A program made the position numbers and the translations under genes. Shown here piece after piece: positions 4,141-45,584 of a DNA stretch of 64,000 bases. The stretch's first letter is position 1. Each line of letters begins with the position of its first letter. Location: contig CATNEN010000003.1 of the NCBI GenBank assembly GCA_950097015.1, positions 13,826,001-13,890,000 of the forward strand, written 5' to 3'. The stretch comes from Macrostomum hystrix (taxonomy: Eukaryota; Animalia; Platyhelminthes). The notes under the pieces are model-generated. The model did no database searches, was not told the DNA's origin, and was given only the letters and a program-made list of their open reading frames with translations.

Positions 4141-4390
4141 AATCAATCAGTCTGTTCCTTACATGATTTTACGGTTGATATTGCACCTATATATTATATT
4201 ATATTATAATATTATATTGCCGATAATAACTAGCCAATAATACTTAATTCATCTATGTGCTCTTTAACTAGTCGATAATCAGTAATCCATCAGTCTGTTC
4301 TTTAACTAGCCGATAATCATTAATCCACCAGTCTATGTTTCAGTTAGCCATTAATCCTCATAATATAATAGTCCGATCCTCAAGTAGCCT

Positions 4391-7300
4391 TTAATACCTC
4401 ATGCTATTTAATCCATCGGCATGAAACTTACCTGTGCCACCAGATATGACGTGATCGCTAACAACATGACCATTGTAACCGCTTTCCTCACCAACACCGC
4501 TATCTGGTTTGTGATGACTCTGCATAGGTTTCGGTGTGGCTTTGGCTGCACTGGAAACAGGCTGATTGGTTGTAACAATCGAAACACTGCTTTGTTCAGT
4601 TCCGTTGCTAATTCCGTTTCCTCTGCCGGAGTGTTGATGATTTGAATAGCGGACAGTGGCATTTGTTGCGGCAAAAGCTGCGCCGTTAGTGACTAAACTA
4701 ACGCTAGACTGATAGACGCTGCCTAATACGATAACCTCTTCGTTGAATTTTAACAAAGATGGCGACACAGGGCCGAACAGTATGTAGCAGCAGTTGGAGG
4801 CGCCACTGCCTTGATCAAACGGATTTATTAAATCTGGGTGGCGCCTCTGATTAAAGCTGCCTTTTATCTGTAAAGTTCAGTGAAATTAAAATTTAGCTAT
4901 TAATTGACAAGCAGACATCAGCCAATCAGAAGAGACTTAGGAGGAGGCAAATAACAAAGTAATAGAAAATTTTTGGCCAATCAAAATGGATCTGGAGCTT
5001 AGACAGAAAAATATCAGTAAAATAGTTTGCTAGCCAATAGAAAACATTTTAGGGGTAAGAAAGAAAATTTAAGATCCCTCTGGGAAATTGCCCCGATAAC
5101 TTCACCCGAAAATTTTTGGTCAAACGCGATCAAATGGCGTACGAGTATTTCGACCATGTAAAAACTATCGTGTTTGAATCGGGTTTGCGTTAGGAAATGT
5201 AGCGGAATCGTAAATTTCACCCGATTCAAATGTGATAACATGTCCGAATTTAATTCGATTTAAGGTTGATGATCGGGTTCGATAACAAAACGATTCACTT
5301 CCGATTCAGACTCGCTTTTCGATACGATAATCGCCCAGTTATCGCATTTGTTACCGGGCGAGTTATTGGGAGAGAAAAATTGGACTACAGAATCAATCCA
5401 CTTCTGTTTCAAACTCGATTTTTCACGCGATTATGGTCCAGTTATTGAGTGAGATAAACCCATTTTCTTCTAATTTCTTTTTTCTGTAGACTTTACTTAA
5501 TTTCTAAACGAAAAAATTGCACTTTAATATACATGTAGCTTTTTGCAGACCATTTGATCCTTCGAGCATTCGATTTAATCCACACTGGCAAAATCCAAGC
5601 GTTTCAGGCCGATTTTCAAGTTGTCTATGGCCAAAAGTATGACCATAGAGCAATCGATTTGATAATTCGGACACGCATTTAGTCCCGCCCCATAGATTTA
5701 ATATTTTATTTGAAGGATCAAATCGATTGCTCTATGGCAGGGGTCGGCAAACTTATTAGCTAGCGGGCCAAAGAGAGAACCTAAAATATCATATTGGGCC
5801 GCATTGACTGTAGAAATATGAGACAGGGGAGAGACACGAGGCAGGCGAGAGATGAGACATGGGAGAGACAAGACAATGGAGAGATAAGAAACGGGAGCGA
5901 TAAGACACGGAAGAGATGAGACAGGGGAGAGACGAGACAGGGGATAAATAAGACAGGGGATAGATGAAACAGGGGAGAGATGAGACAGGGGAGAGATAAG
6001 ACAGGGGATAGATGAGACAGGGGAGAGATGAGACAATGGAGAGATAAGAAACGGGAGAGATAAGGAACAGGAGAGATGAGACAGGGGAGAGACGAGACAG
6101 GGGATAAATAAGACAGGGGATAGATGAAACAGGGGAGAGATGAGACAGGGGAGAGATAAGACAGGGGATAAATAAGACAGGGGATAGATGAAACAGGGGA
6201 GAGATGAGACAGGGGAGAGATAAGACAGGGGATAAATAAGACAGGGGATAGATGAAACAGGGGAGAGATGAGACAGGGGAGAGATAAGACAGGGGATAAA
6301 TAAGACAGGGGATAGATGAAACAGGGGAGAGATGAGACAGGGGAGAGATAAGACAGGGGATAGATGAGACAGGGGAGAGATGAGACAGGGGAGAGATGAG
6401 ACAATGGAGAGATAAGAAACGGGAGAGATAAGGAACAGGAGAGATAAGACAGGGGAGAGACGAGACAGGGGAGAAATAAGACAGGGGATAGATGAAACAG
6501 GGGAGAGATAAGACAGGGGATAGATGAGACAGGGGAGAGATGAGACAATGGAGAGATAAGAAACGGGAGAGATAAGGAACAGGAGAGATAAGACAGGGGA
6601 GAGACGAGACAGGGGAGAAATAAGACAGGGGATAGATGAAACAGGGGAGAGATAAGACAGGGGAGAGATAAGACAGGGGATAGATGAAACAGGGGAGAGA
6701 TAAGACAGGGGAGAGATAAGACAGGGGAGAGATGAGACAGGGGAGAGATGAGACAGGGGAGAGATGAGACAATGGAGAGATAAGAAACGGGAGAGATAAG
6801 GAACAGGAGAGATAAGACAGGGGAGAGACGAGACAGGGGAGAAATAAGACAGGGGATAGATGAAACAGGGGAGAGATAAGACAGGGGATAGATGAGACAG
6901 GGGAGAGATGAGACAATGGAGAGATAAGAAACGGGAGAGATAAGGAACAGGAGAGATAAGACAGGGGAGAGACGAGACAGGGGAGAAATAAGACAGGGGA
7001 TAGATGAAACAGGGGAGAGATAAGACAGGGGAGAGATAAGACAGGGGATAGATGAAACAGGGGAGAGATAAGACAGGGGAGAGATAAGACAGGGGAGAGA
7101 TGAGACAGGATACTAGGTGTCGGAAGGGGGCAACGGGCCGGATTTGGGAGCTTCGAGGGCCGCATCTGGCCCGCGGGCCGGAGTTTGCCGACCCCTGCTC
7201 TATGGTCATAAGGGTAGGAAATGCTTTTGCTTCGGCTTCGCGCACTCGTGCCTTTGCCATTGACGCACTCATCGGCGTGGAGGAAGCATTCAGTCCTGAA

Positions 7301-31300: not shown

Positions 31301-34300
31301 TACTTTTGCTATAGTCTGGATTCTGATCAAATTTGGACAATTGTATCGCTTTTTTTTCTTTGGGTTATAACGCGTAAAGTGTCCAATTTGAGGGAAAATG
31401 TGTAAAGAAAGGAATGTTAATGGAAAAATAGGGGAAGAGAATGGGAAAATAGGGGAAAAGAATGGGAAAATTGGGGAAGAGAATGGGAAAATTGGGGAAA
31501 TGAATGGGAAAATAGGGGAAGAGAATGGGAAAATTGGGGAAATGAATGGGAAAATAGGGGAAGAGAATGGGAAAATTGGGGAAATGAATGGGAAAATAGG
31601 GGAAGAGAATGGGAAAATTGGGGAAGAGAATGGGAAAATAGGGGAAGAGAATGGGAAAATAGGGGAAGAGAATGGGAAAATTGGGGAAATGAATGGGAAA
31701 ATAGGGGAAGAGAATGGGAAAATAGGGGAAGAGAATGGGAAAATAGGGGAAGAGAATGGGAAAATTGGGGAAGAGAATGGGAAAATTGGGGAAATGAATG
31801 GGAAAATAGGGGAAGAGAATGGGAAAATTGGGGAAATGAATGGGAAAATAGGGGAAACTAATTGGAAAGGGAGAAAGTAGATGAAAGTTCCGAGTTCAGA
31901 AAGTAGATAAAAGTAGAAATTAGAAAGTAGGCAAAGCTAATGGGAACATAGGGGCAGATAGGAAAACATGGAGGAAAATGGAGAATTGATATTTTATATA
32001 ATCAGTTTGGGAAGACAAATCAAAGAGTGTCAGTTTAAGTAGGAATTTTCTTCTATTACTTCTTTTTCAGCCAAGCAAATCAGGCGATCATTTCGTTAGC
32101 GGCAACGGTAACAATAGTAACTCCGGCGGCAATGAGCAATCGACTCTATTTACTGAGATGCTAGTCAACCTAGTGACTAGCCAGGTGTCCCGATGTCCAC
32201 ATCCGCTGGTGTCGTTGCGCTATTTCGAAACCGTTGTTCGATACGAAAAGTTTTTTGTGCACAATACGCAATTTGTGCCTGAAGTCTTAGTGAGTGACAT
32301 TTTTTAGAGTTTTTTTCACGGATTGTATTTCTTGCTGCAGTTACTAATTAGATTTTAGGATTAGAAACTTCAGGGGATTTGATTTTAGGATTAGAAACTT
32401 CAGGGGATTTGATTTTAGGATTAGAAACTTCAGGGGATTTGATTTTAGGATTAGAAACTTCAGGGGATTTGATTTTAGGATTAGAAACTTCAGGGGATTT
32501 GATTTTAGGATTAGAAACTTCAGGGGATTTGATTTTAGGATTAGAAACTTCAGGGGATTTGATTTTAGGATTAGAAACTTCAGTGGATTTGATTTTAGGA
32601 TTAGAAACTTCAGGGGATTTGATGTTAGGATTGCAAAATTCAGGGGATTTGATTTTAGGATTAGAAACTTCAGGGGATTTGATTTTAGGATTGCAAAATT
32701 CAGGGGATTTGATTTGAAGGATGGAATAATTCATGGGATTTCAATGTACACCTTGTAGGATTGAATAATTCAGGAAATTTGAGTTTAAGCATGGGAGAGT
32801 TCATGGGATTTGAGTTTAAGGATAATTTAATGGATTGCTTGGAAATAATCTCCTTCAATAACAGATGTCCTTCCTAGACGAGCGAGGCCTTCAGAGTCCA
32901 AATCTGATGGTGCGATCTCGTGTTAGCTATCTGCTGTCTCGATTTGTCAAATGTCACAAGTGAGTATTTGTCCTTCTTGGATTGTTGTTATTAATTATAC
33001 TATACATTTAGGATTTCTTTAAAATGCTAGAATCAGTTAAAAAGCTACTATCCTAAAATGCTACTAGCAGTAGAAAGACCGTGTTCTCGATTTTCATGGC
33101 GATTGGTTGAATATTTTGGGAGAATAAAAAAATAAATGCCTGAATTACTTGATTGCTAATATTCAGGCATCAGTTGCGTGGCTATACAGAGGAGATACTA
33201 GCCAAACTGCAGTCTCTCCTGAGGCCGCGACATGTCAGTCTGTCAGCTTCTACTCCAACTAGCGACAATGCCGGCGATGCAGCTGTCAATCAACCAATCA
33301 GCGATGCTGGCGACGACGATAATCCGCCGCTAGCGCCGTCTGATCAGATGTTCCTTTTTGAATCGGCCGCCCTATTGATTGTGTCTAGCAGTGCTGAGCC
33401 GCAGCAGAAAAGGGCTCTATTTGAAGCTATGCTGAGTCCATTGTTGCAGCAGGTAAATTGCTTGAGTTTTCTTAACTACTTTACTTCAATGTTTTTACAG
33501 TAAATCGGATTCTAGAAACACACAATAGGCATCCGTTTGGCTGTTAGGATATTATAATGCAAATCCCATCACTGTTGCACTAACGGAGCTTTGTTGATGA
33601 TGACTGAGCTGTAGTCTTTGTTGGTGATGACGGAGCTGTAGTCTTTGTTGGTGATGACGGAGCTGTAGTCTTTGTTGGTGATGACGGAGCTGTAGTCTTT
33701 GTTGGTGATGACGGAGCTGTAGTCTTTGTTGGTGATGACGGAGCTGTAGTCTTTGTTGGTGATGACGGAGCTGTAGTCTTTGTTGGTGATGACGGAGCTG
33801 TGCTCCTGTAGTCTTTGTTGGTGATGACAGAGCTGTGCTCCTGTAGTCTTTGTTGGTGATGAAGGAGCTGTGCTGCTGTAGTCTTTGTTGGTGATGACTG
33901 AGCTGTAGCCCTCTCTCCGCGGCTTAACGCCAAATTACTGTGTTTGTACCATAGAACATTCGCTTCTTGTCTTGTCATGCCAAATAACGACCTAATTTCA
34001 CCCGCCGTCGCTAGGTAAGCCGCCTAGTAACCGAGCTTCCACAGCAACCAGACGAGGCTAGCCAATTAGCTTACGCCGAATGCGCCAAATGCAACATTGA
34101 ATTTGTCTCCCGCGCCTCCAAAGCGTTCAGCGTCGGCGCCACCATGGCCGACAACGGCTGCGCTGAGCCGTTCGCTCAGCTAACCGGAGCTTTCCTGGAA
34201 GCGCTGGGCCTGCCAGACTGGGTTGCCGGGCGAGGCAGGATTTGCACAGCGGTTCGCGGCTACCTGCATCGCATGGTCATCTGTTTGGATGCCGGAGTAC

Positions 34301-37300
34301 TGCCTTACATACCAATGGCTGCTCAGCAGTTGTTGAGATCACCCGATGCTCAGGTTTGTTGAAAATTCGCCACCTGTGGACAGTTATTGATAAAATTATT
34401 TCTCTGTGACGCATTTATATTAATTGCGGTCATAATCTGTACTATGAGCATTTTAGTTCGATATTTAGGTCATTAGCTTTGTCTATGAGAATTTTAGTTC
34501 GATAATTAGGTCATTAGCTGTGGCTATAGGTATTTTTAGTTCGATATTTAGGTCATGAGTCATAGGCTGTGAATCTAGTTAAGGTAATAAATTGTCCATA
34601 TCATAATATATTTATTAAGGCATTAGCAGTCTTCCAACTTGACACCATAAACTTGTCAGGATCTGCACGATTTCTACGCTCTACTTGGCCAGCTAGTGCC
34701 GAAATTCAAGTCCGAATTGTTGCCATTCCTGGCTAGCTTGCTGCCTCCGCTGATGCAGGCGACTATGACCGCTCTTGGTCAGCTGGGCGCTCAGCCGTCT
34801 CGCGATCCTGGCTCAGCTGGTCCATTGCGCAAAGCTTATCTAGCATTCCTGGCCTGCCTGTGCTCAAATCAGTTGGCTGCTGCGATTCTTTGCCAACCGT
34901 ATGACTGTCTGCGGTGTGCCCTGGCCAGCCTGACTGGCGTGGTTGCGCCCGATGGCTCGTTGGCAGACGATGCCGCAACTTGTCGAGCCGCTATTGGCTG
35001 CGCTAAAGGTTTAGCTTTAGCTACGTCTGATTCTGATTGGCCAGCCGGTGCTAGCGTTGGAAGACAGGCTTTTTTAGCCGAATTTCTATTGGCCAGTCTT
35101 CGAGCGCCAATCGGAAGCGTCGATTTGAGAGAGGCGCAGACTGCACTGTTTTTAAACGATTTGGGCGCTTTTCTTGTTGCTCTAAAACAGTCAGCGGTGA
35201 GTAATTTCTTTGACAACACACCCACCACCCCATAACACCCACCCCAAAATACCATCCACCCAAAGCACCCACCACCGCATAGCTCAACTCCATTACACCC
35301 ACCACCCCATAGCACAACCCCATTCCCGTGTGGCCATCTGATCAGGTTTTTCGCCCGGTAGGCGATCGGGATTTTTGCCCGGTTTGTAATACATTTTTTC
35401 CTATCTAAAAACCCGAAAATCCTCGGGAAAGTGGTCTCGAAAACGGACGAAGACGGCAGTTTCGTCTGGTTGTTCGTCAGGAATTTCGTAGAGGACATCA
35501 GGTATTTTCTCGGGTTTCTCTTCGGCTACTCAAACTGATGAGTACCCTGAATAAAACCCGACAAATGACCGGATGAAAGTGCAATAGCAGAACCCGGCAA
35601 ATAACCGGGGCAAAATCAGACTAAAACCTAACGAAAGCGACACGACGACCCAACCGGACGAATATCCGGAGCAAAATCAGACAAAAACCTAACGAAAGCG
35701 ACACGACGACCCAACCGGACGAATATCCGGAGCAAAATCAGACTAAAACCTAACGAAAGCGACACGACGACCCAACCGGACGAATATCCGGAGCAAAATC
35801 AGACTAAAACCTAACGAAAGCGACACGACGACCCAACCGGACGAATATCCGGAGCAAAATCAGACTAAAACCTAACGAAAGCGACACGACGACCCAACCG
35901 GACGAATATCCGGAGCAAAATCAGACAAAAACCTAACGAAAGCGACACGACGACCCAACCGGACGAATATCCGGAGCAAAATCAGACAAAAACCTAACGA
36001 AAGCGACACGACGACCCAACCGGACGAATATCCGGAGCAAAATCAGACTAAAACCTAACGAAAGCGACACGACGACCCAACCGGACGAATATCCGGAGCA
36101 AAATCAGACTAAAACCTAACGAAAGCGACACGACGACCCAACCGGACGAATATCTGGAGCAAAATCAGACTAAAACCTAACGAAAGCGACACGACGATCA
36201 AACCGGACGAAAAACCCTGCATCCTTATCGAATTGTGTCTACTCTCGGAAATATGTAGTGCCGACTTAGTAAAACATGTACAGTGCGCTTCTGTCAACGG
36301 ATACCGTGAAGAGTAAAGAAGTAAGACGATTGTCAGTTAGTGTTTATACAAACTATGTAACGTTCCATCTTGCAATTCATCAAACTGTTCCAAATCACCT
36401 ACAAGATCAATATACTCCTCTGTTTTTTTATTCCAAAGATATTGTCGAATACAGTCAGTAGGCGCATAGTCGCTAGTCATCTAGGCGCATAAATGCGGGA
36501 ATTTAAAATCACTTCTGACTGGCCAAAAGTATGTTCAGAAAGTCGCCGCAGCTGACTGTGCCGTCCATGGCGCTCTGATCGTCGTCCCCCTCCAGATGCC
36601 GCATTTCGACCTCTCTGGCATCTCCGGCGTCACCGTCGTCATAGGCGTCATTGGCGTCAGATGCAGCTGTTGTATTCGAGAGGGTTGGCTGACAGACTTC
36701 GCGGCTCTGAGCAGAGTCAGCGGAGTCTATAATGACGACTGTTGTGGCCTTCGGCTTTGGCGGTTTCGGCTGCTTCCACTGGGGGGGAGGAGCGGAGCGC
36801 GTTGGGAGTTCCAGTCTCTGCCGCGCAGTCGCAGTGCATTGCGTGAACGCCTGACTTAGACTGTCGGCAGTGCACTGCACCCCGGCGTTCGCGAGCCACA
36901 CACGTACTGCAGCCAATTTTCCCGGGTTTGCGGGTGAAGATGTGGCCTGACCGGGCGCCTTGCGCCCGGACAGTGTGCAGCAGGCGAACTCCCTGTCCGT
37001 GAAGACGGCACGCAGGGCAGCTCGGAGAAATGCCAGCGTCACAGACTTTCGGAGTGCAGTAAGTTTTGCGTCCTCGCCATCCTGTTTGGCTGGCACTTTT
37101 TTGTAGGCTTCTAGCCGATCTTCCGCATCGTGCCGCTTATTCAAAGCTACCTTAACGAAGCCCTGCTGCTCAGAGAATGGCACAAGAGAAGCAGCTGTTA
37201 GGTCAACGTTCGGCGTGGCGGCGTCGCAGGCATCTTTCAGAGCGCGCGTCTGCGCTGCGGACAAGCTCTGCGTTACAGTGAAGGACATGGCGTCCTGCCT

Positions 37301-40300
37301 GGAATCGCTGGCGTCGCCGTCATCACCGCCATCGGCGTCATTGGTGTCAGATGCAGCTTTTGTACTCGAGCGGGCCGGCTGAGAGACTTCGCGGGCATTC
37401 TGGGAAAGCAGCTCTGACCCCTGAATAAGCAGCGAGTTGCACTGCTGCATACTGCTGACCAGCAGCACGTTACAATGCTGCTCGTCCTCCAGTTGGCGTA
37501 AAAGCGTCCGCTCCATACGATTCGCGACACGAAGCTGCTCCGTTAATAGTCGGACGCTTTCTCGCTGATTCGTTTCTTCAACTGTGCTGTGCTGTAACTG
37601 GCACCCTAAAAAAGTATGCGGTGGTTCAAACAAAAAGGCACTATACCCGACCTGAAAGTGCAGAAGTAACGACCAACAATTGATGGCACTCACGCAGGGT
37701 GTCTTTAAGCGACGACTGTCGCTCGTTCTCTATAGCAAACGTCCGGCAGGATGCACAGGCACGTGGAAGTTCCGATGGCTGAGCGTGTACGTTTCCTAGG
37801 ACCGCTGTGCCGGTCGCGATGCTTCTGGAAGCGAACGGCCCACGTACTAGTGTCCCGAGCCATTTTTTCGCGGCCGTCCTGTGCGCCTTAGCGACGACAA
37901 TTAAGACTTCGCTGCCGACATCGACGTTACTCGGGCACTCGCGTTTGCGTCCAACAATGTCATCGCGCGTGCTGACAACTTCTGTTTTTTCAAAATAGTT
38001 GGAGTACTTAAAAATAAAGAATTGCGGTACCGCTTCACGTTCGTAGGGCACCATGTGTTGCTGTATGAAAACGTCGTCCCGTTGGGTGCCCTCTGCGTCA
38101 GCAGACGAAGAAGGGCCCGAAGTCTGTGCAGCAGACATGGTGTCAGTATCTTCGATGGCTGACAATAGCGGATCCTGCAGTCGACGTGATTTCTCGGCAG
38201 TACGACCGAGAAATTGACTCAATGACTCATCGTCATCAGTCACAGCTTTGCGCTTCTTTCCACCGGACTTACTCGACGGCGCCTTTGTTGGAGCTGATTT
38301 GGAGGTCGGCTTCGACTTCGACTTTGAAGTGGACGTGGAATTTGATTTCGACTTGCCGACTACGGCAGTAGTCTTCTTTGCTGTGCCCATTAGGATTAGA
38401 GCAGCTGAAAAAGGTGAGTTTTTGTGTCAATACTGTGTTCTGTGTTCACATGGGTGAAATGTAATTGTACTCGTACGTTACTTTAACTAGGCCTGGACTC
38501 AAGAGTAACAATTAAGGCTGTCGGTTTCCTCCTCAATCAAAAAGTCCGTACAAATTGTGCCGGCAACAAGGCCTTGTGTATTTATCAGCATATGCTGGTA
38601 TACATACAAACGTGCATGTCTAACGTCCATCATCTCAATGTCATCATCATCTCAATGTCATCATCATCTCAATGTCGTCATCATCTCAATGTCATCATCA
38701 TCTCAATGTCATCAATCCATCAATTGAGGCAGTCTCCAGTCCATCAATCGCAGTAGTCACTCGTATTCAGTGCGGGGTCTCGGTGACAGACCCTGAAGCG
38801 GCCTTCGACGCCACTTCCTCACTTTCAATTGATCCAACGGTACGGGAGGTGGTGATGGCAGCATTTCAATCGCGAAGAAGTTTGGCGCTTGCACGATCCG
38901 CCTGTGTCGGTGGCGGCCGTGCAGCGCTAAGCGGCGTGCTCGGCTAGTCGGCGACAGCTCCGCGTACCATGAGGCGCAGTCCGGGCAAGTTTGCGCAGGT
39001 AGTAGGCGTCGCTCGTCCCAACGCCTCGACTCAAATGACGGTGGAGCAGCCGGTGGTAGCCGGTTGTAGTCCTCCCACGTATACTTGGACTCAGCAGTGG
39101 CTCGCGCGCGGGTCGACGTTGGTGGCGGGCCGGGAGAGTGACCACCGATTGTGGTGTCGCTGCCGTCATCGGAGTCGACGTTGGCACGGGCATCCCCGTC
39201 AGCGATCATTCGGTCGAAAAGTTTTGGCCAGTCAATTATGGGGCGATCCGACATGATTTAAATCCAATGGGGTCAGTCTGAAAAGGGTTTTGACACCTAT
39301 AAGAATATTCTTATTCTTATGCATATGAACACAACAAAAAATGAAGTGAATATAGTATACAGAAGTAACACGTAAATAAGCTACATATGACTCATAAAGC
39401 ATCTCATCCAGATGCTTCTGGAAACCGGACTCAATTTTTTGGTTTAATTGCATCTACTATTACGTGCATATATATACATTTTTACAAAATCGCTAACAAT
39501 TAGAACGACTACTACAGTTTGTTAAAAAATAAAATAGAAATTTGATTATTTTTTTGCCAATCGTAAAGTAAGGAAAAAACGAAAGGAAAATACGTTTTAT
39601 GCTGGCAATCAGTTATCCTAGCCTGTCAATCAGTTATCCCAGCCTGTCAATCAGTTATCCCATTGCCACGGACGCCTACGAATAGCCCAACTGCGGATGG
39701 GCCCGCAGAGCTACTTTTGTGTCGGTGACGACACAGACGCCACGAAACTGTGGCAGCCCCACATGAATCGGGTCGCCGAGGTAGCTTAAGTCGCCGAAGG
39801 GATCGCATGCGAATACTCGGAAGTGCGCGAGTCGACAGCCTCGATTAGGTGACGTTGTGGCAACCTGTGCTAGTTCCTCCAGCGGGTCGAAGGCCGCGAG
39901 AACTGGCAGTACGAGCAGTCCGAGCCTAACCTGCTCACCTTGACATTCGATGGTTTGCACTCGGCAGAATCGGAAATCCGTCGTAGTGTCACCTTCGATG
40001 GCCACGAAGCCTGCCGCATCCTGACATCCGGGAGTGAAAATTCGTATTGTCCAACCGGATTTCAGAGTGGCACTGTGCCATCCGACTTGCCAGCGCTTCG
40101 GTCGACGAAGCACGACATCTGGAAGGGTGAGTACTTCTGTTCGACGGAATAATTCCTCTTCGTCTTGCTGATCCCCGTGCCCCATCAGTCGCGCTCGCGC
40201 TTGGATGGTGCCGATGTGGCGCTCCACCGCGCCAACCAGCTCGACGTCGGTGCGCCGCGTCCCATGCAGGCGTTTTTGCAGGCGCAAGTGCGTGCTTTCG

Positions 40301-43113
40301 AAAATTCCAGCCGATAGGCGGTGCGCAGAGCCGGCCAGATGGACGTATGTCAGCATGTGGCAGCACACCTGATGAGCATTATAGGTTAGTGCTCTTAAGG
40401 AGTACAACCTATACGGTTTGTCGTGGAAGTGGCGCAATGCAATCTCTACGTGCCGCAACTCAGACAGAGGCGCATAATCGGCAGTCATCCAGAACACTGC
40501 AGCGGAAAGAAGTAACAGATGCTGGTAGTGGGCGGGTGGTAGGACGGCTTCCAAAACGAGGGGGCCGTTGGCCATCAGCCACATTTCTAACTCGTGCCCA
40601 CGGAAATTGCGGAGGTCACTCAGTGGACGCACTTCATGGCGTTGGACGTTGATGGGCAGCCGGATGCGGAGCAGCGGCTCATCGACCTGATGTTGAAGCC
40701 GGTGCAGGTCCGGACAATTAGTTTCTCCTCGGTCCGGCTTCTCGGCCCGCACCAGGAATAATTGGTACATTATCATCCGGACCAGACCTAGGTGCAGCTG
40801 GTGGAGATAACACGGCGGATATCCGCGCATGAAGTCAAAGCCTGAGAGGCGTCCTAACGGAGAGTGGCCTCGGACACCCTATGTGTCTGTGTTCTGGTGC
40901 CGAGCACCTGCTAGGTGTTGCTCCGCTAATCTGCGCGTATCTGCCATGCTCCGCAGGACAGTTTGCAGACAACCTAGACGTCGAGCAGCATTCTGCATTG
41001 CTGGCGTTAAGCCGACGTCGAAGACACGCCCAGAGCCTGAAGGATGAAGACGCGTAGCAATGTAGCACTTCTCGCAGCCGTAGATAGCCGTGCATCGTCG
41101 CATGCGGAGCGCATCTACACGAGCCGGTGAGTCGAACATTGCTAGCAACGGATGGAAGCGTACCGTACGCTGAACTCCATCAGCGTCAGTGTACGTTACG
41201 CCCCGGATGCGTAAAGAAATCAGCGCGTCGACGACCACCGGAAGGAAAGCCGCTGAACTCACTTTGGTCTTAGCAGCCCAGAGCCCACAGATTATGACAT
41301 AGCGCAACTTGACATGATCGTGAACCTCGTTGATGCTTAAGTAGACTGGACACACCTCTACCTTGCTGGTTGACCGTGCTGGAAACCCATCAGAGCTCAG
41401 AGTATACGAGAGGTCGCTCTTAGCAACTAGGTTTATCGACTCCCGAAACTGTCTGTACAGGTGACTGTTGTAGAAATGGATGGTGTCTTCGTGCGGATTG
41501 AAGTCGGAAGGAAAAGTCAAATTATGCAGCAGTCCACATGACTCTATGTAAGTTCGGATCTGCTTTCTAATGTTGAAAACCCAGAAGTTTGCGACTCTCA
41601 TTGATCCGCAGTCACTGCGATGTCCACCGTTTTGACTGCAGTCTCCTCGGTAGTTTACGTAGCACTCGTTGCACACAGTGACGCATTTTGCGGAGCCGAT
41701 GTAACTCTGGGCGGACTTTAGCGTCCGCCACATAGTTCTTGCAGTGCGCGGAATTCAACTTCCCGGAACCAGACAATGCACAAGACGTAGAAGTCTGGTT
41801 ATTTTTTTACTTGGGATTCCAAGATCAATGGCGCACAGCTTTGATATGACACACAGCTTCACCAATGGTGCCCGTGATGGGTTCGCCGTTGTGCCACGGT
41901 AGCTGTAGCCAGGGATCAAGAACTGGCTGTTCCTGGCCATCGCTGTCGCTGGAGTCAAGTGACTCAGCGTCACTGCCGTCACTGGAGTCTGTGGGAAACG
42001 CGCGATAGTTTTTCTGTATCAACGGATATCGGGGCCGCATTTTGCAGATCCTCGATGCTACTCACCATGCTCAGAGGGCTCAGAGTCGGGTGTCTCTGTA
42101 CCGTCGCTGCCATTGCGGCCAGCGCTACGGACGCTACGCCTAGCGGGCCAATTCGGGGATGGGACTTTGCTTATACATTTTTGTAAAAGAGGAAATCAAC
42201 GTTGGAATCCCACAGTACCATGCAGCCTTCAGAAATGTGTGCGATGACAGCATTAAAATGACAATATTTTTATTCTCAGTTTACGTGAACTACGCTCGTA
42301 ATGTAACATATGAAGACGCTCATATGATATATATAAAGATGAGCGGAAAAAATACTGCAAGAGAACAAAACAGGAGCACATTACAGGACATACAATTACA
42401 AGAAAATCTTCATGTCAATTGTCAAGTATACACTGTGTCTCCCATACCATTTTCAACCCAATCCTGAATTAAAGGCTTTCATCAGCTCTTTTCTCCGGCT
42501 CTTGTCCGGTCGAAGAACCAGAGAAAGAACCGGGCAAAATTCCAGGCGGAAATGTTATTTCATCCGCTTTTACTCCGGATTTCCCTGCGTTACTAAACTG
42601 GTTCCAAACCTGGCGAAGGACCGGGTAAAAAACCAGATCACTCGTACGGTTTTTCCTCCGGAATTTTGCCTGGTTTAGAAAGGCAGAGAAAAACCGGATA
42701 AATTCGCCTGGTTTATGTTCTTCGCCTGGAAATGGGGCAAAAAACATAGCAAGCCAGAGCAAAACCGGGCGAAAAACCTGATCGGATGGCCACACGGGTT
42801 ACACGCACCACCCCATAGCACAACCCCAAAACACCCACCACCCCATAGCACAACCCCAAAATACCCACTACACACCAATCATTTGCAGCCAAGCGTGATT
42901 CTACCCTGCGTTCAGACTGCCATTCGCGCTTCGGCAGCTCAAGAACTGCTCAATCTGATTGGCCAATGCGACACAAACAATCACAAACCTGTGGCCAACT
43001 TTTTAAAAGTGAGTATTGTCTTTTTTTTCAAGAGAATAGCTATGAATCATTTAATTAATTCCACCTGTCCTTTTTCATTTCAGACCTATTATCACAGCAT
43101 AAAATCAGCATAG
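28325..43113 (+). CDS. XPOT: Exportin-T (tRNA exportin), ~1071 aa
   Basis: Exons 28325-28594, 29170-29408, 29832-30496, 30878-31293, 32071-32289, 32865-32959, 33167-33452, 34015-34353, 34660-35196, 42889-43008, 43084-43113 join in frame (3216 nt). Motifs VKYFCLQVIE, FVRNKVAQL...VDYPQRW, AIDGDVVDREI...IKDRMRE, YASWIDISL, GEEEAMFDEYR, YFETVVRYEKFF, FLDERGL...VRSRVSYL, YLHRMVICL. Confidence 0.93.
28598..29105. repeat. ~22-bp pyrimidine-rich minisatellite (XPOT intron 1)
   Basis: Unit caatcttcactctactctc(tc)n. Confidence 0.9.
29490..29775. repeat. 16-bp minisatellite (XPOT intron 2)
   Basis: Unit ggataaagaccggtta. Confidence 0.85.
31420..31860. repeat. 21-bp G/A-rich minisatellite (XPOT intron 4)
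   Basis: Unit gaatgggaaaat(a/t)ggggaa(ga/at), ~21 copies. Confidence 0.95.
32350..32715. repeat. 30-bp minisatellite (XPOT intron 5)
   Basis: Unit gattttaggattagaaacttcaggggattt, 12 copies; its degenerate tail (32700-32825) recurs inverted at ~44510-44695. Confidence 0.95.
33585..33908. repeat. 27-bp minisatellite (XPOT intron 7)
   Basis: Unit gagctgtagtctttgttggtgatgacg. Confidence 0.93.
35611..36210. repeat. 61-bp subterminal tandem repeat of the CACTA element
   Basis: Unit caaaatcagactaaaacctaacgaaagcgacacgacgacccaaccggacgaatatccggag, ~10 near-identical copies. Confidence 0.95.
36509..38390 (-). CDS. Transposon accessory protein, coiled coil plus C-terminal BEN-like domain, ~597 aa
   Basis: Exons 38390-37694 and 37605-36509 (GT-AG intron 37693-37606, phase 1, in frame). 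K/S-rich basic N-terminus, CxxC (CASC) plus coiled coil, BEN-like segment AFLRAALRAVFTDREFACCTLSG...NPGKLAAVRVWL...AFTQCTATAR. Confidence 0.72.
38628..38712. repeat. 17-bp tandem repeat between the element's genes
   Basis: catcatctcaatgtcat, 5 copies. Confidence 0.9.
38757..39254 (-). CDS. Transposon-borne CtIP/Sae2 C-terminal-domain-like protein, 165 aa
   Basis: Intact ATG-to-stop ORF with RRWDERRLLPAQTCPDCASWYAELSPTSRARRLALHGRHRHRRIVQAPNFFAIEMLP. This aligns by eye with the CtIP/RBBP8 SAE2 region (R..ERR.L....CxxC..YY..L......K.L...SRHR......TPENFW...FP). Confidence 0.75.
   Translation of the reverse strand: MSDRPIIDWPKLFDRMIADGDARANVDSDDGSDTTIGGHSPGPPPTSTRARATAESKYTWEDYNRLPPAAPPSFESRRWDERRLLPAQTCPDCASWYAELSPTSRARRLALHGRHRHRRIVQAPNFFAIEMLPSPPPVPLDQLKVRKWRRRPLQGLSPRPRTEYE
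39676..42040 (-). pseudogene. CACTA/EnSpm transposase disrupted by in-frame stops
   Basis: One reading frame (41982-39676) broken by TGA (41757-41755) and TAG (40881-40879). Transposase_21-type motifs LSSDGFP...CPVYLSINE...IICGLW...FDSPAR...YGCEKC; GVRGHSPL...FDFMRGYPPCYLHQLHLG; RPLSDLRNFRGHELEMWL...GP.VL; LY...TYNAH...H...G....SAGIFES. The N-terminal structure (possible intron or frameshift near 41830-42070) is uncertain. Confidence 0.85.
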
Positions 43114-44236: not shown

Positions 44237-45584
44237 AATGCCTCTTGCCGTTTACTTGTTCTGCCGGTTCACTAGCCTCTCAATTTCCTTTGCCCAACAT
44301 TTTCTACTCCTCTGTGTTGATAATAAAATCAATAATTCCCCTGAATTATCCCTAAATCCAACAATAAAATCCTCCTAATCATCCCAAGATACAACCAAAT
44401 ACCATGTATTATCCCATTTTTCCATCAAATCCCATGAATTTTCTGATTCACCAATCAAACCGACTGAATTATCCTATTCAACAATCAGATCCCATCCTTA
44501 AAATCAATCCCATGAATTATTCCATCCTTCAAATCAAATCCCCTAAATTATCTCCATCATACAACCAAATCCCATGAATTACCTGATTTAACAATAAAAA
44601 ATCACATGAATTATCCAATCCTTAAACTCAAATCCCATGAACTCTCCGATGCTTAAACTCAAATTTCCTGAATTATTCAATCCTACAAAGTGTAAAATTT
44701 TAGGTTTTCGCCTTTCTTAAAGACTCAATAACCAATTAGTTGTCATTTTTAACAAAAAATTTACGTCTTTCGTTAACCTTTGCTCCTACACCGGCAATCA
44801 CATATTTCTATTTTCGCCCGCCTAATTCTAGGAAAATGTGATTTTTTACTTTATATCGCCATTCGTGCCAGTTGCTTTATGGCACGAAGTTACATTTCAT
44901 CATAATAAAACTTGTACACTATGATATTTTAGAAAAAACAAAAACTGTTAGTTTTGCTTTGCTCTCGTTAATATCTGCTTGACTTTGATATTTTTTCTTC
45001 TTCTTTTCGATTTGCCTTCTAGCTGTCACGGTGTGTGGGATTGGCATGTTTAGTTTAATTGTTTGTACAACGCCTTCTTGTGTAGTTTCTTGTTTATTTC
45101 GCTATCAAAAATTGATCTATGCAATTGAAAAAATCCTAAGTTAGGGACAGAAAGGTAACGCTAAGCTTTGAAGTTACTAATGCCCAATAATAGGTTCTAA
45201 AGTTGGTTCGCTAGCTGTCTTTGTGTCTATTTATATATTTCCTGTTTGTTGTTTCTCGCAATTTGACAGCTAGTAACCACGGTTGATTGTATTGATACCT
45301 GTTATAGTAAATTAAGTCGCTTTATTTGCAAAAGCTGCTTCAGGTATAAAGTTATTCAAAAAGCATCTGAGCTTGAAATTTGATTTCTGGTTCAGTCGTT
45401 GGTTTATATGCGCTAAATCAGCTGCTTTTTTAATATTGATTTTTTGCCTTTTCAAACACATTTGAGAAGGCTGCCCTATTTTGGACAGGAAAAAAATAAA
45501 ATTGCGAATTGCAAATTCTTCCGTGTTGTATTGCAAATTTTGTGTCTTTCGACTATTTTTTGCTTAAAAATACTTTCTATCAAC

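Follow-up and report, generated by a model that had tools for sequence, protein, structure and literature searches.

The C-terminal region of CtIP (RBBP8), Sae2, and Ctp1 binds RAD50 and is needed for cleavage by MRE11 (10.1101/2023.03.25.534200), and a peptide of 15 amino acids (aa) from the C terminus of Ctp1 is enough to stimulate that cleavage, as the same paper relays from Zdravkovic 2021. Binding to the FHA domain of Nbs1 is a property of pS-x-pT motifs, such as the pSer-Glu-pThr motif in human CtIP and its counterparts in Ctp1 and MDC1 (PMC8079451). Among DNA transposons, the animal members of the CACTA superfamily, including SmTRC1 from the flatworm Schistosoma mansoni, have CCC termini and 2-bp duplications (DeMarco et al., PMC1636069). 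The element described here joins the two subjects. It lies in a stretch of 64,000 nucleotides from the flatworm Macrostomum hystrix (assembly GCA_950097015.1, contig CATNEN010000003.1, positions 13,826,001 to 13,890,000 of the forward strand), referred to below as the window, and it carries, next to a transposase gene, a gene for a 165-aa homolog of the CtIP tail that we call mini-CtIP. We are highly confident that this open reading frame (ORF) constitutes a gene in its own right within a divergent CMC or "TRC"-type transposon, that it comes from the C-terminal part of a Macrostomum-lineage CtIP, and that it has been carried throughout the diversification of the transposon family in this genome. 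Our searches of the literature on CtIP or Sae2 with transposons, on Macrostomum with CACTA elements or CtIP, and on transposon-encoded repair genes yielded no report of such cargo.

The ORF shares its orientation with the transposase ORFs and with the downstream ORFs at 37641-38390 and 36509-37693, and the plus-strand translation of its interval is full of stops. The original prediction, made from the letters of the window, had described an intact 165-aa ORF within terminal inverted repeats (TIRs), between and co-oriented with a transposase and a gene that it called BEN, and the ORF coordinates and the TIR pair confirm this layout. The peptides that it quoted, ERRLLPAQTCPDCASWYAEL and RRLALHGRHRHRRIVQAPNFF, are present, and the region upstream is AT-rich as described. 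The gene and the motifs of its product are as follows.

38757..39254, minus strand: mini-CtIP gene, 165 aa, ATG to TGA, no internal stop
Residues 27-35: acidic SDT motif, DSDDGSDTT in the window
Residues 63-67: YNRLP motif
Residues 90-93: CxxC motif, C90-P-D-C93
Residues 114-116: RHR motif, R114-H115-R116
Residues 125-127: NFF motif
Residues 134-135: S-P
Residues 149-152: basic RRRP tail

In an alignment of 19 sequences, comprising transposon copies, host CtIP, and vertebrate and invertebrate CtIPs, columns R77, R82, C90, C93, H115, and R116 were invariant, and all invariant columns of the CtIP tail domain are kept in the window ORF. The predicted order of CxxC and RHR at the C-terminal end of the protein thus stood. 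CtIP/RBBP8, Sae2, Ctp1, and COM-1 have the same motif order and invariants (R..R, CxxC, RHR, NF[W/F], and a basic RRxRP end) at the same C-terminal position, and an acidic S-x-T motif lies upstream as well. Those proteins, however, are about 300 to 1,300 aa long, whereas mini-CtIP has 165 aa, is without the CtIP_N coiled coil and the T847/S267-type cyclin-dependent kinase (CDK) site, and has F for W; unlike them, it is also transposon-encoded, present in tens of copies, and, in the case of the window ORF, below Pfam detection. At the position of that aromatic residue, the window reads VQAPNFF, rat CtIP TNTPENFW, host Macrostomum CtIP QAPNFF, and the other element lineages D[PA][NQ]F[WF]. The idea that an Asp replaces T847 as a phosphomimic in some lineages was dropped, because the alignment puts this Asp one column off.

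Profile searches tied the family to CtIP from both sides. The Pfam SAE2 model (PF08573) was matched by 7 of the 11 aligned family members, with a best E value of 7.9e-6, and over the whole genome it found eight places, all of them mini-CtIP family members (best score, 25.7 bits). A profile built from the 11 family tails and run against 1.84 billion proteins matched 282 of them at E<=0.001. Two close relatives came first, and the matches that followed were the C-terminal ends of proteins of 500 to 1,300 aa (E of 1e-12 to 1e-10) that carry Pfam SAE2 and CtIP_N and are named RBBP8 or CtIP in rat, gar, pipefish, hagfish, and others; the C termini of amphioxus and nemertean CtIP were also retrieved. 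When the nemertean CtIP was searched against the genome, it matched only the mini-CtIP family and the host CtIP gene. The window ORF itself is 48% identical to the CtIP of Macrostomum lignano over 132 aa (E of 2e-30), and it has no fewer than 31 matches in the genome, at 36 to 100% identity and mostly with open frames. A word-indexed search of public proteins found nothing with the family alignment and, with a 299-aa member, nothing but the host CtIP of M. lignano. Public protein sets thus revealed no relatives borne on transposons beyond this genome, which is not proof of their absence. Sequence searches of the PDB with the ORF and the family profile returned no relevant match, and no solved CtIP tail is in the PDB. 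The tetramerizing coiled coil CtIP_N (PF10482) had no match in the window ORF, and a genome-wide search for it gave weak coiled-coil noise only. AlphaFold predicted a nonglobular mini-CtIP (predicted template modeling score, 0.33) with confident short helices over residues 60 to 150, as would be expected of a partner-dependent tail.

The bounds of the transposon follow from its TIR pair, the limits of homology to a twin copy, a step in G+C content (0.50 to 0.55 within the element against 0.36 to 0.42 in the surrounding DNA), and the ends of public contigs. It was inserted into an intron of a host gene, of which an exon 5' of the element (34696-35198) has a weak Exportin-T match. Its features are given below.

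35325..42798, genes on the minus strand: whole transposon, 7,474 bp
35323..35324, repeated at 42799-42800: 2-bp target-site duplication, TT on the plus strand (AA in gene orientation)
35325..35359: left TIR, 35 nt, 97% complementary to 42764-42798, beginning CCCGTGTGGCCATC
42764..42798: right TIR, pairing with 35325-35359, its terminus checked against the twin copy L029
35600..36211: subterminal array of a 61-nt unit repeated 10 times in tandem (10.0 copies at period 61 with 98% matches by Tandem Repeats Finder)
36509..37693, minus strand: orf394, 394 aa, with a long helix at the N terminus and then a BEN-like DNA-binding domain whose core is at about residues 205 to 295
37641..38390, minus strand: orf249, 249 aa, a basic serine-rich N terminus and a conserved C-terminal half
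39255..39675, minus strand: AT-rich spacer upstream of mini-CtIP, G+C content of 0.33 against 0.61 for the ORF
39676..42040, minus strand: transposase gene, in ORF pieces 41825-42040, 40879-41733, and 39676-40830, with the CxxH motif PPCYLHQL

The twin copy, L029, lies on another contig (C24). Every ORF in it is 95 to 99% identical to that of the window element at the protein level (about 97% for DNA), it has the same terminus and the same flanking dinucleotide (AA in gene orientation), and the homology starts and stops exactly at the inverted repeats, with unrelated flanks on either side. An assembly artifact is ruled out because L029 shares the ends but has different flanks on a different contig. 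Contigs from four public runs likewise match up to 42798 and then continue into other flanks, which are further insertions of the same end. The more distant copies L031 (8.0 kb) and L039 (8.5 kb) are complete elements, with intact transposase and intact mini-CtIP genes inside CCC-type TIRs that start CCCGC and are flanked by TA; their CCCGY..TGGC termini are related to the left TIR of the window. CCCG... ends and a 2-bp duplication were thus found in four elements. Inside L031, an inverted duplication of 89 nt, 99% complementary (4273-4361 and 5270-5358), brackets the mini-CtIP ORF, and the sister copies L030 and L032 are without it. The 61-nt subterminal units of the window element are, from their arrangement, candidate binding sites for an element protein. 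Shorter repeats border the mini-CtIP gene: a 21-nt unit is repeated three times at 39602-39662, at the distal end of the spacer and just past the transposase stop codon, and a 17-nt unit is repeated five times at 38628-38724, right after the mini-CtIP stop codon. Outside the element, satellite arrays of about 30-nt units (ATTAGAAACTTCAGGGGATTTGATTTTAGG and variants) at 32350-32830 and 44390-44690, in inverted orientation and about 12 kb apart, flank the host gene segment that holds the transposon.

The ORF is not the genome's only CtIP-like sequence, which had been named as an outcome that would undo the original prediction. A separate, multi-exon host CtIP, the ortholog of M. lignano Mlig004387 (P0002/P0152), lies at C39:3400481-3400912 with further exons upstream. 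Compared with M. lignano exon by exon, it matches in the tail exon (73%), in the middle exon, and in the N-terminal coiled-coil exon (55%). Within 5 kb at this locus (L033, C39:3395700-3405699) there is no transposase. Host CtIP shares with mini-CtIP the QAPNFFAIEMPP(S/T)P, ADYNRLP, and DDEGSET motifs, the KRRxRPL end, and a common clade in the tree; it is unlike mini-CtIP in being single-copy and multi-exon, in having a coiled-coil exon and a long middle region, in having no transposase nearby, and in being conserved between species. As a CtIP, the Macrostomum protein is itself unusual: it is short (481 aa in the partial M. lignano model), carries NFF rather than NFW, is without a T847-type site, and, in M. 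lignano, has no Pfam SAE2 match at E<=0.01.

A maximum-likelihood tree of the tails, of the kind proposed with the original prediction, put the transposon copies and the two Macrostomum CtIPs in one clade (100/99), apart from the CtIPs of other animals, so that the capture took place within this lineage. In the free tree, the host gene was nested within the transposon copies as sister to the subgroup of the window (89/93); a single transposon clade was not rejected by the approximately unbiased test (P of 0.22). The tails thus indicate that mini-CtIP derives, by a single capture or by several, from a CtIP of the Macrostomum lineage. A compact CtIP-like protein of 315 aa from a 1.6-kb metagenome contig (P0003), with an N-terminal coiled coil and an SAE2 tail (E of 5e-9), was the nearest outgroup to this clade. 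The proposal that the element had captured only the C-terminal module proved too narrow. Beyond the tail, the transposon genes keep ADYNRLP and the acidic S-D/E-T motif, DDEGSET, of host CtIP, and some element lineages align with host CtIP over about 240 aa (241 aa in one of them). The DDEGSET motif is present in the host CtIP of two species, and units of the type DDEGSETQGP have been amplified to four to six tandem copies in two element lineages. In L019:1480-2427 and L020:1492-2388 (also in L022 and L008), the N-terminal halves of the proteins carry tandem short acidic units, with DDEGSETQGP six times and DDDGSETQGPGECG four times; these amplifications are independent in several lineages and derive from the single DDEGSET motif of host CtIP, and other lineages have other units.

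Retention of mini-CtIP was seen across the family. Nine further copies, with transposases 36 to 66% identical to that of the window, have transposase, mini-CtIP, orf249, and orf394 in the same order and orientation; a search for copies with this kind of layout had been proposed with the original prediction. For these copies, the identities of transposase and mini-CtIP to the window copy rise and fall together (Spearman coefficient of 0.9, n = 9, points not independent). The residues observed by tblastn were placed on the columns of L031 for this comparison, with gaps kept at breaks and nothing filled, and only the rank covariation of identities is claimed because the deep nodes of the transposase tree are poorly resolved. 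Between lineages, the proportion of nonsynonymous differences (pN) was 0.18 to 0.49 and that of synonymous differences (pS) 0.66 to 0.92; the nominal dN/dS of 0.05 to 0.39 lies well below 1, and the values are rough because dS is saturated. The start codon and the N-terminal motif are conserved between lineages, and other element lineages have a short N-terminal CxxC and helix-like segment (MDHWTHAA.C..C...LR.E.RRLR). These comparisons indicate that mini-CtIP is conserved cargo under purifying selection between element lineages. The window copy is a recent, decaying relic, with a broken transposase and three conserved mini-CtIP positions altered: it has L132, W148, and Q154 where its twin and the family consensus have P, R, and R, and public contigs carry the consensus alleles at 38860, 38813, and 38794.

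The transposase itself is probably, and with good confidence, a divergent enzyme of the CACTA/CMC superfamily, to judge from its sequence. The window copy has lost its open frame: an in-frame TAG stands at 40879-40881, and the frame changes between 41733 and 41825. In the contigs of another copy from two public runs, TTG stands in place of the TAG (40880 T>A), and therefore a near-identical copy elsewhere may be open at that point. Intact homologs were found in L031 (1031-4027, 999 open codons) and L039 (1474-3807, 778 open codons). The transposases of the window, L031, and L039 matched no Pfam family, Transposase_21 (PF02992) included, and a search of the whole genome with PF02992 gave matches at other loci and none at the family that bears mini-CtIP. 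Those other transposase families, which match Transposase_21 directly (at C32:781912, C1:10067798, C24:3669607, C33:2052697, and elsewhere), are distinct from it. The sole relative among 5.8 billion proteins was a sea urchin protein annotated with PF02992 (E of 7.6e-24), 26% identical over 490 aa that cover its PF02992 region; on rescanning, this protein scored 26.3 bits for Transposase_21 against a cut-off of 28.6. The two share DG..F/WP, DAPA, and GC..C blocks and the CxxH motif, with PPCFLHQL in L031 and PPCYLHQL in the window aligned with APDFMHCL in the sea urchin protein. The nearest Atlas clusters to the transposase were of Transposase_21 (0.97 to 0.98). A C/DxxH motif downstream of the second catalytic Asp was reportedly assigned to the CACTA/CMC superfamily by Yuan and Wessler in 2011. 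Of the earlier label "CACTA transposon," the superfamily probably holds, given the CCC ends, the 2-bp duplication, and the divergent enzyme; the literal name does not, as the ends begin CCCGTG without the plant CACTA motif, which makes the element of the TRC type, and there is no direct Transposase_21 match.

Two described elements are close in organization. SmTRC1 (PMC1636069) likewise lives in a flatworm and shares the CCC TIRs, the 2-bp duplication, the presence of several co-oriented ORFs, and, probably, an enzyme related to Transposase_21; unlike it, the window family has a transposase too divergent for a direct match to PF02992, and whereas the accessory proteins of SmTRC1 are without known homologs, one of those in the window element is CtIP-derived and one BEN-like. 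Maize En/Spm, with TnpD and TnpA, is likewise a multiprotein CACTA element with subterminal repeats (PMC1636069), but there is no homology to TnpA here, the termini are not CACTA, and the third gene comes from a DNA repair factor. A splice-acceptor-like ttttcag stands 22 nt before the mini-CtIP ATG in the window and a similar tttcag just before the ATG in L031. By analogy with En/Spm, such sites before the ATG in two lineages hint at a spliced leader, and those before the accessory ORFs suggest that the genes may form one spliced transcription unit.

Of the two downstream ORFs, orf394 is likely a BEN-like gene, an assignment that comes from its predicted fold. Its core is conserved in five copies, and 8 of the 10 best PDB matches to the AlphaFold model (core predicted local distance difference test values of 75 to 89) were BEN domains of Insv, BEND6, Bsg25A, and BANP (ranks 1 to 7 and 9), with probabilities of 0.82 to 1.00 and template modeling scores of 0.48 to 0.63 on the target but weak E values of 0.04 to 0.5. 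By sequence there was no match to Pfam BEN (PF10523) or the PDB, a profile of the BEN ORF included, and the BEN label of the original prediction is likely rather than proven. The other, orf249, is kept at the same place in nine other copies, matched no Pfam family, and shares its reading frame with the BEN ORF in L039 and L031, so that the two probably belong to one gene, with orf249 as an exon upstream.

Parts of the window are contained in 14 public runs of the same organism, whose RNA label was guessed; four of them were compared over 5,901 letters as contigs. None of the four had any depth over the host flank, an observation that speaks against plain genomic DNA as their source without proving it. 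All four also contain an internally deleted, gene-less derivative in which window letters 36505-36534 directly precede 42201 (about 36534 joined to 42201), at much greater depth than the full element (up to 399x against 1 to 8x in run X10). Such a derivative is the kind of product that interrupted gap repair is expected to make.

What the protein might do can be read from the CtIP features it keeps. Conservation across lineages indicates that the elements of CtIP that contact MRN (MRE11-RAD50-NBS1) have been retained under selection, and the acidic S-D/E-T motif is, by its sequence, of the kind that docks CtIP, Ctp1, and MDC1 onto the FHA domain of Nbs1. Taken whole, our best explanation is a CtIP-tail gene of the transposon that serves as an element-encoded MRN cofactor at excision breaks, an account to which we give slightly less than even weight. 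Mini-CtIP would be made from the element together with the transposase, would bind host MRN through the same surfaces as CtIP, and would turn on the MRE11 endonuclease at donor-site excision breaks, whose ends may be capped or protein bound. Repair would then be shifted to resection and copying from the sister or homolog, by which the element is restored at the donor site and its copy number goes up. This sequence of MRN binding, MRE11 activation, and resection-based donor restoration is tentative, and the functions put forward with the original prediction (opening of hairpins, a bias toward homologous recombination, or a decoy role) are inferences as well. In its most specific form, a CtIP-derived, CDK-independent activator would dock on Nbs1 through S-D/E-T motifs and on RAD50 through the tail and would impose resection and homologous gap repair on the breaks left by excision of the element itself, which is possible but doubtful. 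In yeast without Mre11 or Sae2, no revertants of hAT (Ac/Ds) excision were recovered (PMC3299998).

Several observations weigh against this account. The window ORF gave no Pfam match at E<=1, SAE2 (cut-off, 19.8 bits) included, so that the profile check proposed with the original prediction failed for this copy and succeeded for the family; the miss reflects lineage divergence, because the M. lignano host CtIP also fails PF08573. The CDK site (T847 in CtIP and S267 in Sae2) is absent from the window ORF, which has F for W, and both features are shared with host CtIP. CtIP needs its tetramerization domain in vivo, and the window ORF is without such a domain. Besides the roughness of the dN/dS values between lineages, recent copy pairs had nonsynonymous to synonymous changes of 7:4, 7:0, and 3:4, which is relaxed constraint; unconstrained changes are as expected after a copy has inserted. 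The contigs of the four runs cover most of the element, including the mini-CtIP ORF, with alleles of other (sister) copies, and no splice joints were seen in them. In the literature, we found no evidence of hairpin formation by CACTA-superfamily transposases. Retention of the MRN-contact motifs, finally, fits an inhibitor as well as an activator.

That last point leads to the chief rival, a decoy or dominant negative, which we consider unlikely. A tail-only protein would occupy the CtIP sites of RAD50 and NBS1 without tetramer-dependent bridging of DNA; resection would be blocked or ATM signaling damped, and excision breaks would be sealed fast by end joining, so that the cell survives transposition. 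The conserved contact motifs, the absence of the CDK-regulated threonine, and the absence of a CtIP_N-like coiled coil in the window lineage all agree with this, and the Rif2 MIN and TRF2 iDDR motifs offer a model for tail-only modulation of MRN, as these short telomere-protein motifs are small regulators that inhibit MRN at the CtIP-binding surface of RAD50 (10.1101/2023.03.25.534200). They differ from mini-CtIP, to which they are unrelated in sequence, in being host-encoded and in being inhibitors, whereas the Ctp1 C-terminal peptide, as cited in the same paper, stimulates MRE11 on its own and does not block it. The N-terminal CxxC and helix-like segment of other lineages, moreover, would suit an oligomeric activator better, and end joining at the donor site brings the element no gain in copy number. 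Quite unlikely, in our judgment, is a transposition cofactor independent of MRN, in which the CxxC/RHR region would bind or bridge ends or assemble the transpososome, like TnpA aiding TnpD. A CACTA element typically depends on a second protein of its own (PMC1636069 on TnpA and TnpD), subterminal repeat arrays are present, and conservation is strictest at the RHR and CxxC residues, in a region that binds DNA in Ctp1. The element already has a BEN-like DNA-binding protein suited to that role, however, and conservation, even amplification, extends to features that do not bind DNA, namely the Nbs1-type S-D/E-T motif and the basic tail at the C terminus.

The gene could also be passive cargo, a host gene fragment captured as in Pack-type elements without benefit to the element. 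Gene capture by CACTA elements is known (PMC6379663), and in Pack-CACTA captures, as here, a host gene is carried by a DNA transposon; the window copy and some others are decaying, and the run contigs over the ORF have a guessed RNA label, sister-copy alleles, and no splice joints. Pack-type captures, however, are usually fragments without lasting selection, whereas mini-CtIP is conserved across deep lineages and, unlike them, derives from a break-processing factor. Lineages with saturated synonymous sites still have open frames and every invariant residue of the domain, the gene has the same position and orientation in all lineages, and the start codon and N-terminal motif persist, which together make passive carriage very improbable. 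Ordinary host paralogs or an assembly artifact, with no true link to a transposon, would be an extremely remote explanation. Nothing was found for it; at the host CtIP locus, no transposase is nearby. It is refuted by the two near-identical copies, which lie on separate contigs between unrelated flanks and have the same TIRs and 2-bp duplications, by the TIR-bounded complete elements of other lineages, and by contigs from independent public runs that run past the end of the element into different flanking DNA.

Host-derived replication and repair genes do travel on DNA transposons, as the RPA-like genes of Helitrons illustrate. The gain in copy number of a cut-and-paste element depends on how the host repairs the gap, and that choice has so far been treated as the host's. 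A CtIP homolog kept under selection through the diversification of a transposon family suggests that the element itself manipulates the choice of repair, and an element-encoded activator of MRN, if true, would turn conservative transposition into replicative gain. Mini-CtIP is a natural minimal CtIP tail for the study of MRN activation, in a directly testable system, and other DNA transposons can now be examined for accessory genes of this new class.

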